Below are positions 43,102 to 49,100 of a stretch of DNA of 64,000 bases, in pieces (the stretch's first letter is position 1; each line of letters opens with the position of its first letter). The position numbers and the translations under genes are program-made. Source of the DNA: Adineta vaga (Eukaryota > Animalia > Rotifera); assembly GCA_021613535.1 (NCBI GenBank), contig CP075496.1, positions 2,046,001 to 2,110,000 on the forward strand. The letters run 5' to 3'. Under the pieces are notes generated by a model. It ran no database searches and was not told where the DNA came from. It saw only the letters and a list, made by a program, of their open reading frames with translations.

Positions 43102-46100
43102 TTATGTCATACCGGATTCTAACCGAGAAAATAAAAGAATTTAATTACTTAGACAAGAATTATCGAAATTACCAATAGCAATTTTCGAAAGCATAGTATG
43201 AGCAGAAGCGGTATCACATTCGAGCGAGGTTAGTCTAATAGATGACATAAAAGCATGGAATTGATCATGCGTTCTAGTATTCTAAAACTTACCTTGAAGT
43301 CGAAGAAATATTTCGTGATTGTCGTTGTAGAATTGTATCATCATCATCGTCTTCGGGTCTAAATTTTTAGAGAGAGAAAAACATAGAGATAGATTGTTTT
43401 CAAAAGAAGCATTTTATGCGCCCAAATAAATCATCTGTATATATTTTATGTCACTCACACGTAATGGGAATATTTCGCGAGCGAAATAGTTCGCACACGT
43501 TTTCCCCATGATGATGAATTCCTAAGATATCAAATCAATTTAAATATATAAGTCGAGAAGAAATCATAGTAACGCATTTAATTGAATCGAAAGTAAAAGG
43601 AAGTACTACTTACTTAGCAAGATAAGTTGGAGTTTGATATTGAGATAATGTTGTTTGCATCAATTCAGATTCTTTTTGATCATTTACAAACATTGTTCGA
43701 GATTGAAGAAGTTCTGTTGGACTCATTGTCTTCACTTTTTGTTCTAAATAATGAACAATTAACAAAAAAAGAACAAGTTCGATGGGCTTTATTCAATTAA
43801 TTATTTATCAATTCATTCATCCATATCGTACGTCAGTAACGTCAAACGTTTTTTCACATGATCGTGATTACAGGTAATACGGAAAGGGTTTTCTTTACTT
43901 TTTTCGGTAAACATCGTCATGATTCATCATCACTCTGATAAAAACTTACCATCTTCCTTTTTCATTTGGACTAATTCATGTTCGTTAATATATTTAAATT
44001 GTCGAGCTAATGAAAACAACAAGAATATAGAAATAAGAATTGATCGATCACATACGTTTCGGTTGTGGCGGTGAATCTTTTAAGCCACTTTCAAAAAATT
44101 TCTTTTTATCTTTAAAAGATCTTTCGGATCCTGATACGGACATATCAGACTAAATTAGAAATTGAATTCGATGAGAAAAAATTTCGTTTCGAATCAATAA
44201 ATAATTTACTTCATCGATTTCAAAGCCATTTTGTGGTTGAATTCGTGGAGAAGGTAGATGAAAGGTAGTTGTTGCCTTTTGATTGTCACCATTGGTTGAA
44301 TTTAATGGACGAAATTTCGGTTTAGCAGGAATAGGAGGTGGTTGTGGAGACTGTAAAAACAAATGAGTCAATGAAAAAATAAGATCGATTAAACTTACGA
44401 TGGGACTTGTAGGTTTTGAATTCAAAATTCCATTGGATTTTGGTGAAGATGGTTTCTGTGCTACTGTCGAAGTCGAATCATTTTGTTTAGATTTTTTATT
44501 CAAACCAGATGTTGAACTACTTGGAGTAGTTGTCTAAAAATAAACAGATAAACAAAATTAAACAAAACCAAAACTGAAAATATATTTACTTCGTTTGCTT
44601 GAAATCCATAACAAACAAGTAAATTAATCGTTTTCTCTTGTACACTAAGCCATTTTTGAGCATCATCCAAACGAGCACCAAATAAACTTTGATTATTAAC
44701 CTAGATGTACAAGAAACAAAACGTTAAAAATATCCAATAAATAAAAGACAAAAGAACGCAATTCTCATTTGTTTCCCGACATAAATATAAATATGTATGT
44801 ATATTTTGCCTCATTCGTTACATAAAATACTAAAAAGAAATACAAATATCTATTAAATATATATTGTTTTGTTCAATTTTAAAATAATTTTCCATAAGAC
44901 ATTAATAAAAGTAAATAAAAACTGAATAATTTCATGACAATATCATACATAACAGCTCGAGCTAAAATCTGACCAAGTGCTGGAGGTGGTACATCAACTT
45001 GTTGATTATTAGTCGGTAAAATTTGTTCTTCTTCAAGAACAACAGGTGTTTCTTCAGCTACCTGTCGTAATGATGTAGCAAGTGAATCAAGAATTTCATT
45101 TCGTTCTTCATCATTATCAATATCAGTATGAATAGCATAGATAATTTCATTAATTTCACATAGATTTAATTGTTTCGTTTCTTGAATATTGAGATATTGT
45201 TCAGATGCAAGTGAAGATAAATCAAATAGATCATGAGATGAATTATTCGATGAAAGATACATTTCAACGGCATGTAAAAGATTAATTGATTGAAGTGAAA
45301 TACGATCGAATTGACTATTATTTGGATCAAATTTTAGTGGTAAAGCATTTTCATTCGAACAATACAGACATTCTTCAGGATGAATTTGTTCATCGAGAGA
45401 ATATTGTTGTTTAATTCGATAATTTGATAAGGATGTATATGAATGTACGAGAAATGTTTTCGGTGTTGAAGAAATTGGTACAGATGGATCGAACGAAAGT
45501 GATTTACAGGAGAATTGAGGTGTTTCATGTTTAATGACAGGTAATGGTTCAATTGATTTCTCATCATTTGTAGGTGATGGTGATGATGACGATGATGAGA
45601 GTGAAAATGAACTTGATATTAAATCTTTTAATGTAACAATTGGTGCGAGAATATGTTCGGTAAACGTCATGTCTTTTTTCGTTTCATTGAAATTTTTCTT
45701 TGTCGAATGAAATAATGCTGATAAACAACATGAACGAGTTTTTCTTTGTTGACGAATTTTTGTTCGCTTCTTTTTCATTATATAACCACTTGACCGTGTA
45801 CGTTTTATATGAAATGATGATAATTTTTCTAATGTTAATAAACCTTTTAAATGAACGATATCATCTAAACTTGTTTCACAATAATCTCGTATTGTTCCAT
45901 AATCCATTGATGATGATATGGATGATAAAGATGATAATGTACTAGTTATTGAAGGAGATTTATGTGATAAACAAAACCATCGCTTGGAACATGAACAATT
46001 CACTGCCTAGAATAATCGATATTCTTGAACATACGTAAACTTTGGGTCATATCAAGCGAATGGACGAAGATACATGAAGCATTAGCAGCTTGAGAAAGAA

Positions 46101-49100
46101 CGAAACATATGATATGGAAAAGAAGTAAATTCATTCGATTCATTAATCAACCATAATGTATATGTGTGTGTGTGTATATGGGTGTATTTAGTTTTGAATT
46201 TATACTTACAATTTAGTGAATCAATATTGATTAAATGATAAGATTTCAAACAACATAACGACATCGATATAAAACACGTAACGAATGAGGCAAAACATTG
46301 CGATCATAACGGTAATGGTTCCGACAAAGTGAGGTGTACGTACTAAAGAATTATGGTTTTTATCTTACCTCTAATATTCGAGTACCAACTGTTATCAATC
46401 CAGATGCTGGACTATTTTCTTTGACCTAATGAATTTAAAAAAATAGAGAATTAGATAGAAGAGAACGTCTTAATTCAAAATACAAACTTCAGTAACGAAA
46501 ATTCCATCGTCATCAGGATCATTAGGATTAATATGTTTACCATCTACACCACCATTAATACGAATACCAAGTGCTTCATTCGATTTTTTTGTCAAAGTAA
46601 TTTCCTAGAATGAAAAAAGAAAAACTCAGATCATTGAATGAAAACGAAGTTTTTAATTTGATTCTACTTTTAATCCAATTGGTTGTTGTTCATGACGAAC
46701 AAGTAGAACAACTTCATTTGTTGGTTGTAAAAGTGCTTGAACAGCTTCTAAATGTGTTGCTTGTGTTACATCTTGATTATTAACTTTTAATATTCGATCA
46801 CCAATACGAAGATTTGTTCGCGAAGCAGAACCATTCGAAAGAATCTATTGATGAAAACAAAAAGACACAAACATTCATTCATTCATTCATTTCTCATTTC
46901 AAACTTTACCTTTGAAACAAATACACCACGTTGTTCCACACCAAATGGTGGACATGCTTGATCACTACCACCAACAATACTTAAACCCATTGGACCATTG
47001 CCTTTAGCAACACGCGCTTCCTAACAAAATATATCTTTAGTTTTTTAAATAAAAAAACTTCATTCAACAAACTTCAATCGTATTATCAAGTATTTTCATT
47101 GTCGAATTAGAATTTCCATTGATTATCTTTTCTCGATAACATGTTAATTGTACATCATTTCCACCGTTATTAATCAAATCAATTGCTTGATTATGATTTA
47201 AATTTATTGTATCATATCCATTAATCGATAAAACTCGATCACCGATATTTACTGGACTTTGATTATTTGTTTTTGATATATATAAATTTTCATTTTTCTC
47301 CGTGGAATATCCACCATCATCATCACCACTACCACCACCGGCAACTGAAAATCCAAATTGCCCACCTTGTTTATCATTTCGATGAAGAATTGTTGAATAT
47401 TTTTCGCCTTCCTTTAACGAACAATTTCCATCTTTTGAAAGATAATCATCTGATGATTGAAGAATTTCACGTAAAACAATGACTTCAAAATGATCACCAG
47501 CTTTTTTCAAAGCGGATACAGCTTCACTATGTTCGCAACTAACCAAAGATATTCCATTAACTGACAAAACTTTATCACCAACAAGCAAACCAGCATGACC
47601 AGCTGGACCTTCTTCGGTAACTTTAGTTAAAAATATACCCTAAGAAGAAAAAAAAAGCACGAATTAAAACTTTTAAATAGAAGAAAAGTATTTCCGATGA
47701 ATGTATTTAGTCTAATAGGTTTGTTATGACAAATGAAAGTAATTCTTGATTATCACGAAAGATTACTTACATAATCATCATCTTTATATGCTGATGAACC
47801 AATACCACCGGCAATACTTATTCCAAGACCCGTATTTGGTGAACGATGAACTGTAACGGTGATTTGTTCATGATGAATTGTCATTGGTCGACTGTTACTT
47901 GTTAATGTTGGTGATATCGACTAAGAGTAAAAATTTATGATCGAAATAAAATCAAGTTTATCTTTATTTCTTACATCTTTTCTTCCACTTGCAATTGAAG
48001 ATTTTGTTGGACTATGTAACATAATTTGCTAAAAGAAAAAAATTTTTGTCTTTCTTTTGTTCTAAACAGAAAAATTCAATGAAAATTTACATCAAGAGTT
48101 ACAGGATTATGTTCTTGATTTAGAATTCGTTTATTTTTCAAATGATGTGGCGTATCACGTCGATGAAGTTTTTGTTGAGTATGAGATTGTTTATCGTCAT
48201 CATCATCATCATCACCACCACCACCACTATGTAAATCATCTGTAAATTCGACATGTTTCTCAATATATGTCATATTTTCACCGGGATTTTCATTATGTTC
48301 ATTCTAAGAAAACAAAACTGATTGAAAGAAACAAAAAGAAAAAAGATTTACATCGAAATCAGGATGACCATCAATAGATAATTCAGGTGGAATATAATCA
48401 GTTGAATCTTTATTCATAGGTGATCGATTATGTTGATTATTTGATGCTCCTGATGAGATTGATGGATGTGAAGAATTCGGTTGAAATGGATGTTGGTGAT
48501 CATGATGAAGTAAATTTCCATCAGTTTGAATTTTTTTAGCCATTTTATTTCTCCATGATCGTAAATCTTTCGGATGAGGAGTATTATGTCTTTGTAATGA
48601 ACTCTATTGAAATGAATCAAGTTTTTTTCAAAACTATGAATGACAAAAAAAAGAAACCATACTTCTTTATTTTCTTCTGATTCATCAGCAAATTTAACTG
48701 AACCAGCACGTTCATGTTTTTCATTATCGATGAAATCATCTTGTTGAAAATACATCGGACGTGCGACGGGTGTTTCGTCACTAACATTTTGACATTTAGT
48801 TGTATTGAGAAGATTTTCTAAATTAAATTAAGAATATCGATGAATTACGAACTAATAAGTTTTCCCCTTAGCAAAAAAAGAACAAAAGTTAGCGACATTT
48901 GTTTACCCTGATTCATTTCATCATGATCATCCTCAATGAAATAAATATATAAAGGACGACGATGTAGACGTAAGAACATGATTCTATACAACTTATGATT
49001 GAAATAAAACAAAATATAACAGAAGGATTAATATTAATGACACGAAAGGTTAATAACATTTGAAAAAGAAAATCTCGAACAAACGAATTAAATATCAATG

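Follow-up and report, generated by a model that had tools for sequence, protein, structure and literature searches.

The last PDZ domain of a scribble-like gene in the bdelloid rotifer Adineta vaga is split by an intron that carries two complementary arms, one near its donor and one near its distal acceptor. The arms lie at the equivalent relative position in 11 orthologous or ohnologous introns belonging to two ancient paralog clades. It is probable that they have been kept by selection for pairing with each other, as a looping stem of the Drosophila Nmnat type that would promote distal splicing at the expense of an alternative terminal exon. The host gene, which has LRR and PDZ domains, lies on the minus strand of the window (the whole 64-kb stretch of DNA that was analyzed). 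The first-pass annotation had given the length of the intron as 1668 nt, and the spliced RNA contigs of two runs, X1 and X2, agree: both contain the distal junction (intron 44701-46368), at a depth of 36 to 43. The dominant isoform uses this junction. Other adjoining introns of the gene are mostly 48 to 65 nt. The features of the region are collected in Table 1; phases and frames were checked one exon at a time.

Table 1. Features of the intron and its flanking exons (positions are those of the window)
Feature	Position	Strand	Details
Upstream exon, 57 nt, first half of PDZ4	46369..46425	-	Ends in phase 0 (after …TRILE); splice joints, translation
Intron, 1668 nt, GT..AG, splitting the last PDZ domain	44701..46368	-	Junction in the main spliced contig
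Conserved block abutting the 5' arm on its 5' side	46299..46310	-	GCCATGGTYGCA in most loci; alignments
5' arm	46275..46298	-	70 nt 3' of the donor G at 46368
5' splice-site consensus-like motif GTAAGTAT, in the loop, 5' of the nested exon	46201..46209	-	8/8 WIN-clade loci
Conserved noncoding block, 50 to 85 nt 5' of the nested exon acceptor	46056..46092	-	Alignments
Nested coding exon, 375 codons plus stop	44879..46006	-	Opens right after the AG at 46008-46007
3' arm	44801..44824	-	55 nt past the nested exon stop; 100 nt to the last intron base, 44701
Distal exon continuing PDZ4	44590..44700	-	Phase 0 entry; splice joints, conserved in orthologs

On the minus-strand RNA, 46298-46275 pairs with 44824-44801 at all 24 positions, forming 21 Watson-Crick pairs (18 of them contiguous) and 3 G·U pairs. 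The G·U pairs exist on the sense strand only, since the opposite strand would give C·A. A duplex of exactly this composition had been claimed from the first reading of the sequence, together with the distances of the arms from the donor, the acceptor, and the nested stop codon; the sequence bears out the duplex, and the distances held when recomputed. Arm pairs were located with an ungapped stem finder, as unrestricted RNAduplex on long flanks gave meaningless full-length pairings. A chance origin of the pairing was ruled out in three ways. The 18-mer core has two exact occurrences in the window versus 0.07 expected from shuffles, the stem score is 52, whereas shuffled intron halves reach at most 35, and a scan of the 64-kb window for inverted repeats found, apart from low-complexity sequence, no second high-identity pair. 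When the intron was searched for a further partner of the arms, no second one exceeded the shuffled level. Known structured RNA families (snoRNA, miRNA, and others) were rejected as the identity of the arms because Rfam covariance models run against both strands of 44400-46700 gave no match at an E value of ≤1.

The first-pass annotation had named conservation of the arms in homeologs and relatives as a check on the duplex, and the arms proved to be retained in the 11 loci, with some compensatory change. Across these introns, the arms lie 48 to 79 nt from the donor and 49 to 100 nt from the acceptor, and a 16-bp core (positions -4 to +11) is paired in 11/11. Of the 22 arms examined, 21 have the GCCTCATTCG core unchanged. 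The dS of the adjacent exon is 0.43 to 0.98, meaning that neutral sites are near saturation, and between the window and its ohnolog the intron flanks are unalignable except at the arms. Since both ohnolog clades have the paired arms (referred to here as the clamp), the clamp may predate the bdelloid genome duplication. Two further loci lack the canonical arms. L016 has a destroyed distal exon and two decayed arms. At L017, the most distant ortholog, the gene and the nested exon are intact and the canonical arms are absent, which indicates that the clamp is not universally required; this locus carries a perfect 18-bp duplex of its own covering the region of the proximal acceptor. Pairing of the open reading frame (ORF) with the stretch 5' of the proximal acceptor was considered as a second conserved helix and is unsupported except in L017. 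A metagenome scan with the 14-mer core returned 120 stretches, nearly all of them chance single matches and only L134 and L097 related. L134 was left out as an independent locus; with a 5' part resembling L022 and a 3' part resembling L014, it is an apparent assembly chimera.

Pair counts were taken by script over the 11 loci. Compensatory pairs were found at -7 (A-U/U-A), -5 (G-C/G·U/A-U), -3 (U-A to A-U in L021), and +12 (A-U/C-G). Within -5 to +11, the one-sided changes comprise six that give a sense-strand G·U and one that gives C·A. The ohnolog extends the paired stretch on the outer side and the window on the inner side, such that the length of the helix is kept and its bases are not always. 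The covariation is modest in amount: only the helix edges show it, and it reflects few independent events. The central 10 nt of the helix are invariant and are thus uninformative as to pairing versus sequence recognition. Folding had also been proposed as a check, and it recovered the arm helix both in whole-intron minimum free energy (MFE) folds, for 10 of the 11 loci, and in the RNAalifold consensus of the whole-intron alignment (2050 columns). In a 2.2-kb context, the pair probability of the helix is 0.98 to 1.0; for the 5' arm, a range of 0.54 to 0.98 was obtained.

The loop between the arms contains the nested exon, whose stop codon occupies 44879-44881. A conserved AG opens this exon, and its phase matches that of the flanking scribble exons. 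Its dN/dS is 0.23 to 0.46 overall and ~0.13 over the first 15 codons. The product has a hydrophobic C-terminal tail and no Pfam domain, including no transposase. The nested exon is a genuine coding sequence under purifying selection and is found only in bdelloids. An in-frame TAG lies just upstream of it, and coding constraint begins at codon 1 after the AG; an upstream coding exon ending in phase 0 is therefore needed, and the PDZ4a donor supplies one. The nested exon is probably joined to the PDZ4a donor. Among representative annotated proteins, none fuses the ORF to Scribble, and 16/16 related clusters are ≤349 amino acids long. We also considered whether the conserved GCCATGG begins a nested first exon that would code as far as an internal donor-like site, and rejected this reading, since the stops and phases are inconsistent.

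RNA from the nested exon was present in separate contigs, at a depth of ~5, covering 44892-46044. All of the RNA evidence consists of assembled contigs from one study, so that depth ratios are rough. Neither arm is covered by any RNA contig although the nested exon is, as expected of excised intron sequence. No junction from the donor at 46368 to the acceptor at 46007 was found among the RNA contigs displayed, nor was a poly(A) site seen, and the low-depth contig that crosses the proximal acceptor shows no splice there, continuing ~37 to 38 nt upstream. One contig has a loose end at 45744 that was considered as a splice and rejected as such; it maps to a different chromosome (C3:7791819), so the contig is unrelated or chimeric.

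The arms form an inverted repeat flanking an ORF, as would be seen if they were the functionless relic terminal inverted repeats (TIRs) of a DNA transposon that had brought the ORF into the intron. The first-pass annotation had pointed to the copy number of the 18-mer as bearing on this origin. The 18-mer is present only at the two arms here and at their two counterparts in the ohnolog, which lies on another chromosome, C1; it occurs nowhere else in 100.8 Mb, and other near-matches are no commoner than those of a reversed-pattern control. The arms are accordingly a single copy per ohnolog and not a multicopy TIR. In addition, no target-site duplication was found at the arm flanks, the ORF encodes neither a transposase nor any other Pfam domain, and relic repeats are not expected to be invariant when dS is nearing 1 and the neighboring flanks cannot be aligned. 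A transposon origin is highly improbable, and these data effectively refute it.

Two other explanations accept that the arms are functional and place that function elsewhere. Each arm could be a DNA- or RNA-level binding site of one factor, present in opposite orientations (for example, at a boundary or at the promoter and terminator of a nested transcription unit), with complementarity as a by-product. The near-invariance of the GCCTCATTCG core would fit such a site, as would the unpaired conserved blocks beside the 5' arm and those farther along, upstream of the nested exon. We regard this as rather unlikely, because a binding site does not account for compensatory double changes at four positions, for a 6:1 excess of sense-strand G·U among one-sided changes in the inner helix, for pairing that extends differently by lineage with its length preserved, or for a folding ensemble dominated by the helix. 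Alternatively, the arms could lie in the 5' leader and 3' untranslated region of an independent nested mRNA, where a panhandle in the mature transcript would act on translation or stability and not on host splicing. The 5' splice-site-like motif and several conserved blocks between the 5' arm and the nested exon are consistent with a separate transcript, and so is the unspliced contig over the proximal acceptor, which ends 38 nt upstream. This explanation is unlikely given that the RNA contigs cover the nested exon and neither arm, that the putative first exon lacks a consistently open, in-phase frame, and that the onset of constraint at codon 1, together with the upstream in-frame TAG, requires a phase 0 upstream exon, for which the PDZ4a donor fits.

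If the arms are instead a looping stem, the following course of events would be expected. Once the 3' arm is transcribed, a helix of 18 to 24 bp (about -27 to -47 kcal/mol) would close a loop of ~1.45 kb enclosing the proximal acceptor, the entire 375-codon exon, and the post-stop stretch where 3'-end processing would be expected. Outside the helix, ~50 to 80 nt would remain from donor to stem and 50 to 100 nt from stem to distal acceptor. With introns of ~50 to 65 nt being the norm in this genome, the 1.67-kb intron would thereby resemble a short one, so that the distal splice completing PDZ4 would be favored and the proximal terminal exon used less. We infer that the helix forms in vivo and affects splice-site or poly(A) choice. 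The first-pass annotation had proposed control of isoform choice by RNA structure, with Dscam as its model; the conserved intronic duplex bracketing a genuine coding exon supports part of that proposal, and the comparison with Dscam does not stand. As to whether the clamp is a regulated switch or constitutive, nothing was found that points to a switch, and the dominant RNA has the distal junction.

By its architecture, Drosophila Nmnat is a close analogue. Intron 4 of that gene holds an alternative terminal exon with 3'-end signals of its own, and distal splicing depends on boxes that flank the proximal acceptor of this exon, as established with compensatory mutants (Raker et al. 2009, PMC2724269). 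The Nmnat stem approximates the distal acceptor and makes the proximal one less competitive, and the outcomes differ in their C termini (PMC2724269). The two introns share a pair of conserved boxes around the acceptor of a terminal exon (a candidate one in scribble), one arm lying close to the donor and the other close to the expected poly(A) region, whereas the scribble loop is ~1.45 kb with a lineage-restricted exon of 375 codons, its helix is longer (18 to 24 bp), and its function is putative. In humans, exons looped out by conserved complementary intronic regions are less often included (Kalmykova et al. 2021, PMC8052449), and a link of such pairs to suppression of intronic cleavage and polyadenylation has been proposed (PMC8052449). 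The human pairs are similar in that conserved complementary intronic regions surround an exon, alternative terminal exons included, but they are statistical associations in long-intron, exon-definition genes, whereas the introns of the host genome of the scribble arms are ~55 nt. In a genome with introns of ~55 nt, the clamp may be needed simply for splicing the intron.

Long introns of yeast (e.g., RPS17B/RP51B) contain stems that shorten the distance from the 5' splice site to the branch point. Like the arms described here, these are complementary segments close to both termini of an intron that is unusually long for a genome of short introns, and they cut the effective distance; unlike the arms, they enclose noncoding sequence and affect efficiency rather than the choice between two acceptors. 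Dscam, in which one docking site and many competing selectors produce mutually exclusive exons, resembles the scribble intron in that long-range intronic base pairing influences the exon used. The scribble intron has one arm pair and no competing selectors.

The scribble intron provides a clear long-range pre-mRNA helix outside flies and vertebrates, well supported by lineage comparison, in a setting of asexual animals whose genome is anciently tetraploid and whose introns are very short. Because the looping mechanism is already known, the gain is in breadth and a testable system and not in a new principle. Natural variants are available for tests: compensated and uncompensated arms, a copy that lacks arms and distal exon alike, and a lineage whose duplex is a different one. 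These would allow testing of how RNA structure balances full-length Scribble, with an intact PDZ4, against a truncated isoform with a bdelloid-only tail, and the case bears on the tolerance of very long introns in short-intron genomes. It is possible, though we consider it doubtful, that the clamp is an obligatory adaptation through which a genome with short introns, spliced by intron definition, can accommodate a large lineage-specific coding exon in an essential gene, and that it predates the bdelloid duplication, was maybe replaced independently in at least one lineage (L017), and perhaps reflects a general bdelloid rule by which looping duplexes bracket kilobase-scale alternative exons. 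In a probe of generality, 20 of 58 J-domain loci were examined for a DNAJB6-like case, and no inverted repeat longer than 15 nt was found.

Conservation on the 5' side of the loop extends past the arm. For the block abutting the 5' arm, the complement on the 3' side is conserved only in part, and the reading frame from the ATG of the block is not consistently open. The 5' arm thus lies within a wider conserved block whose complement is partly conserved, which indicates that the 5' side is under some constraint besides pairing. At the place equivalent to the GTAAGTAT motif, GGTGAATGAT is found in the OHN-clade loci L009 and L024 and also in L025 and L026. Between the stop codon and the acceptor, the 3' arm is the sole conserved block in the 3' flank alignment.

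In the minus-strand pre-mRNA of the scribble-like gene, the two arms are complementary over 24 positions, with 21 Watson-Crick pairs, 18 of them contiguous. The remaining three are G·U pairs on the minus strand, where the plus strand would have C·A mismatches. These data confirm the duplex described in the first-pass annotation, including the restriction of its wobbles to the transcribed strand, and every distance reported there was correct when recomputed. The 18-nt core occurs twice in the window, compared with 0.07 occurrences expected from shuffles, and the stem had a pairing score of 52, compared with no more than 35 for shuffled intron halves. 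A scan across all 64 kb of the window identified the arm pair as the only high-identity inverted repeat other than low-complexity sequence. An imperfect 45-nt inverted repeat was also seen at window positions 15682-15726 and 16284-16328, 557 nt apart, with the nonrepetitive ends AAATCACTGG and CCAGTGATTT.

Features of the scribble-like intron and of its most distant ortholog (window positions, except for L017)
Feature	Coordinates	Strand	Placement
PDZ4a exon	46369-46425	-	ahead of donor 46368
5' arm	46298-46275	-	
5' splice-site consensus motif, GTAAGTAT	46201-46209	-	in loop, about 90 nt past 5' arm
Conserved noncoding block	46056-46092	-	50-85 nt upstream of nested exon's acceptor, both clades
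Proximal acceptor AG	46008-46007	-	
Nested exon (ORF of 375 codons)	44879-46006	-	in loop, starts right after proximal AG
3' arm	44824-44801	-	
Distal exon	44590-44700	-	
L017 18-bp complement	L017:2934-2951 and L017:3748-3765 (approx.)		proximal acceptor's branch-point region and ORF

The window is part of contig 4 of a six-contig, 100.8-Mb genome. The host gene encodes leucine-rich repeats followed by PDZ domains and is therefore of the scribble/LAP type. GT..AG joints all along this gene in the assembled contigs of two sequencing runs show that these runs contain RNA, and the joints define introns of mostly 48 to 65 nt. The junction excising 44701-46368 (1668 nt) sits in the main RNA contig at a depth of 36 to 43; this splice joins …TRILE with VNNQSLFG… in phase 0, completing the last PDZ domain, and full-length Scribble is the dominant RNA. 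The nested exon is represented by separate RNA contigs over 44892-46044 at a depth of about 5, one of which continues unspliced for 37 nt beyond the AG. The arm-bearing flanks of the intron had zero RNA contig coverage, and no joint from donor 46368 to 46006 was present among the RNA contig joints listed, which comprised all but three weaker joints. One low-depth contig from run X5, which carries another organism label, spans 45948-46140 and 46276-46425; it links 46425, precisely where the exon starts, to 46140 on switching strands, terminates at the 5' arm's inner edge, and may be a library or assembly artifact.

The first-pass annotation had named a multicopy transposon terminal repeat as one alternative to a regulatory helix. 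When genomic copies of the 18-mer were counted with up to 2 mismatches, only the two arms and two sites on contig 1, 1.37 kb apart, were recovered. The contig 1 sites are the arms of an ohnologous gene copy, and other near matches were as frequent as those of a reversed control pattern. A mobile element was rejected, since the 18-mer is confined to two gene copies, no target-site duplication was found at the arms, and the nested ORF has no Pfam domain. There was also no Rfam match. In pairwise alignment with the ohnolog, the noncoding flanks had diverged past alignability, with both arms standing out as identical islands; the ohnolog helix also has 18 contiguous pairs, displaced outward. The nested ORF has 42 relatives of 217 to 380 amino acids, each without a domain, and their tree contains two clades of 22, one including the window and the other including the ohnolog. 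Rotaria proteins are nested within the window's clade, indicating that the duplication is old.

The DNA surrounding 12 of these proteins was retrieved, and PDZ-coding exons were found upstream of the ORF in every locus that extended far enough. Both arms were present in 11 introns (8 of the window's clade and 3 of the ohnolog's clade) at the same relative place, 48 to 79 nt past the donor and 49 to 100 nt ahead of the distal acceptor. The arms are conserved in both ohnologs and across many lineages. In flank alignments they were the most conserved noncoding blocks, and the 3' arm was the sole conserved block from the stop codon to the acceptor. The dS of the neighboring ORF between loci was 0.43 to 0.98, at which 32 unconstrained bases would not remain identical. 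One metagenome contig, L134, is nearly identical to locus L022 in its 5' part and to L014 in its 3' part and is likely an assembly chimera or recombinant; this mixed makeup would account for the mismatch of its arms at two positions.

Helix positions -4 to +11 are paired in 11 of 11 loci. The ten central pairs are invariant and hence uninformative on pairing, and compensatory states of the kind sought by the first-pass annotation were found at the helix edges. Position -7 is A-U or U-A; position -5 is G-C in six loci, G·U in two, and A-U in the ohnolog; position -3 changes from U-A to A-U in L021 and is A·A in L022 and L134; and position +12 is A-U in four loci and C-G in two. This covariation is real but modest. 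Of the one-sided changes within -5 to +11, six produce a sense-strand G·U and one produces C·A, a pattern consistent with an RNA helix formed by the transcribed strand. The helix is extended outward or inward by lineage, in cases over a small bulge, indicating that its stability is kept; arm-only duplex energies were -27 to -47 kcal/mol. For 10 of the 11 loci, folding of the complete intron placed the helix in the minimum-energy structure, and the RNAalifold consensus of a 2050-column alignment also contained it, with 19 pairs. Its pair probabilities were 0.98 to 1.0 when 2.2 kb of pre-mRNA was folded. Around the 5' arm, conservation extends over a wider block, only part of whose complement is retained, so some sequence-specific constraint besides pairing is likely.

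As judged by dN/dS (0.23 to 0.46 over the full length and about 0.13 over the first 15 codons), the nested exon is protein coding. Its first codon, GCA, is invariant, the acceptor creates an in-frame TAG immediately upstream, and no conserved start codon was found at its beginning; translation must therefore enter from a phase-0 upstream exon. At every locus the PDZ4a donor has this phase, and the simplest interpretation is therefore that the nested exon serves as an alternative scribble terminal exon. A putative first exon starting from a conserved GCCATGG was rejected as not consistently open or in phase. Among the 16 representative clusters of the ORF family, which reach at most 349 amino acids, no fusion to a long Scribble model was found. 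Two Rotaria gene models (P0040 and P0041) splice the last third of the ORF (…VMYDI) to the distal scribble exon with the frame maintained, equivalent in the window to a 1068-nt in-frame cassette with a weak GTCATG donor at 44938; these joins are probably gene-predictor constructs. At its start the product is Cys rich (CSCSKRWFC); it also contains a polybasic stretch, a highly conserved 18-residue segment, and a hydrophobic, tail-anchor-like C-terminal tail, with relatives in bdelloid-like sequences only. Within the loop, the splice-site-like motif is conserved in 8 of 8 loci of the window's clade, with GGTGAATGAT at the equivalent place in the ohnolog clade, and could bind U1 and thereby influence how the nested exon or its poly(A) site is used. 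The noncoding block is strongly conserved and has no consistent coding capacity. Next come a variable spacer and then the acceptor region, conserved as CGATTATTCTAG.

The layout of this intron matches that of Drosophila Nmnat, in which an alternative terminal exon has a poly(A) site of its own and a proximal acceptor flanked by boxes; stem disruption sharply lowers distal splicing, and compensatory mutations rescue it (PMC2724269). In humans, looped-out exons have lower inclusion, and looping structures have been suggested to help suppress intronic polyadenylation (PMC8052449). Based on these precedents, we propose that the helix would clamp both ends of the 1668-nt intron, hide the proximal acceptor and 3'-processing region in the loop, and favor full-length Scribble. 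Transcription reaches the 3' arm only once the entire nested exon has been copied, so the balance of isoforms could be under kinetic control. The switch postulated by the first-pass annotation is partly supported: there is good support for the helix and for its maintenance by selection, while its influence on isoform choice and the identity of the proximal junction are putative. Such a clamp would add to a known kind of mechanism and is not a new principle.

Three loci are natural variants. In L016, the upstream PDZ exons are open but fast evolving and the nested ORF is open; the distal PDZ exon is disrupted by a deletion and a stop, and the two arms have degenerated, with about five changes each and zero remaining complementarity. 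This pattern, from a single, generally degenerating copy, fits the idea that the arms are needed only as long as the distal splice is. Downstream of this copy is a Tc3-like transposase fragment. L025, a 2x long-read contig, retains the 5' arm, but its 3' arm is truncated and its ORF is shortened. In L017, the most distant ortholog, the gene and nested exon are intact, there are no canonical arms, and even the top-scoring flank stem falls among the shuffled controls. L017 contains a different perfect complement of 18 bp, linking a segment 47 to 64 nt upstream of the proximal acceptor with ORF nucleotides 748 to 765. In this single sequence the match far exceeds chance for one intron, and it may form a separate structure that acts in a similar way.
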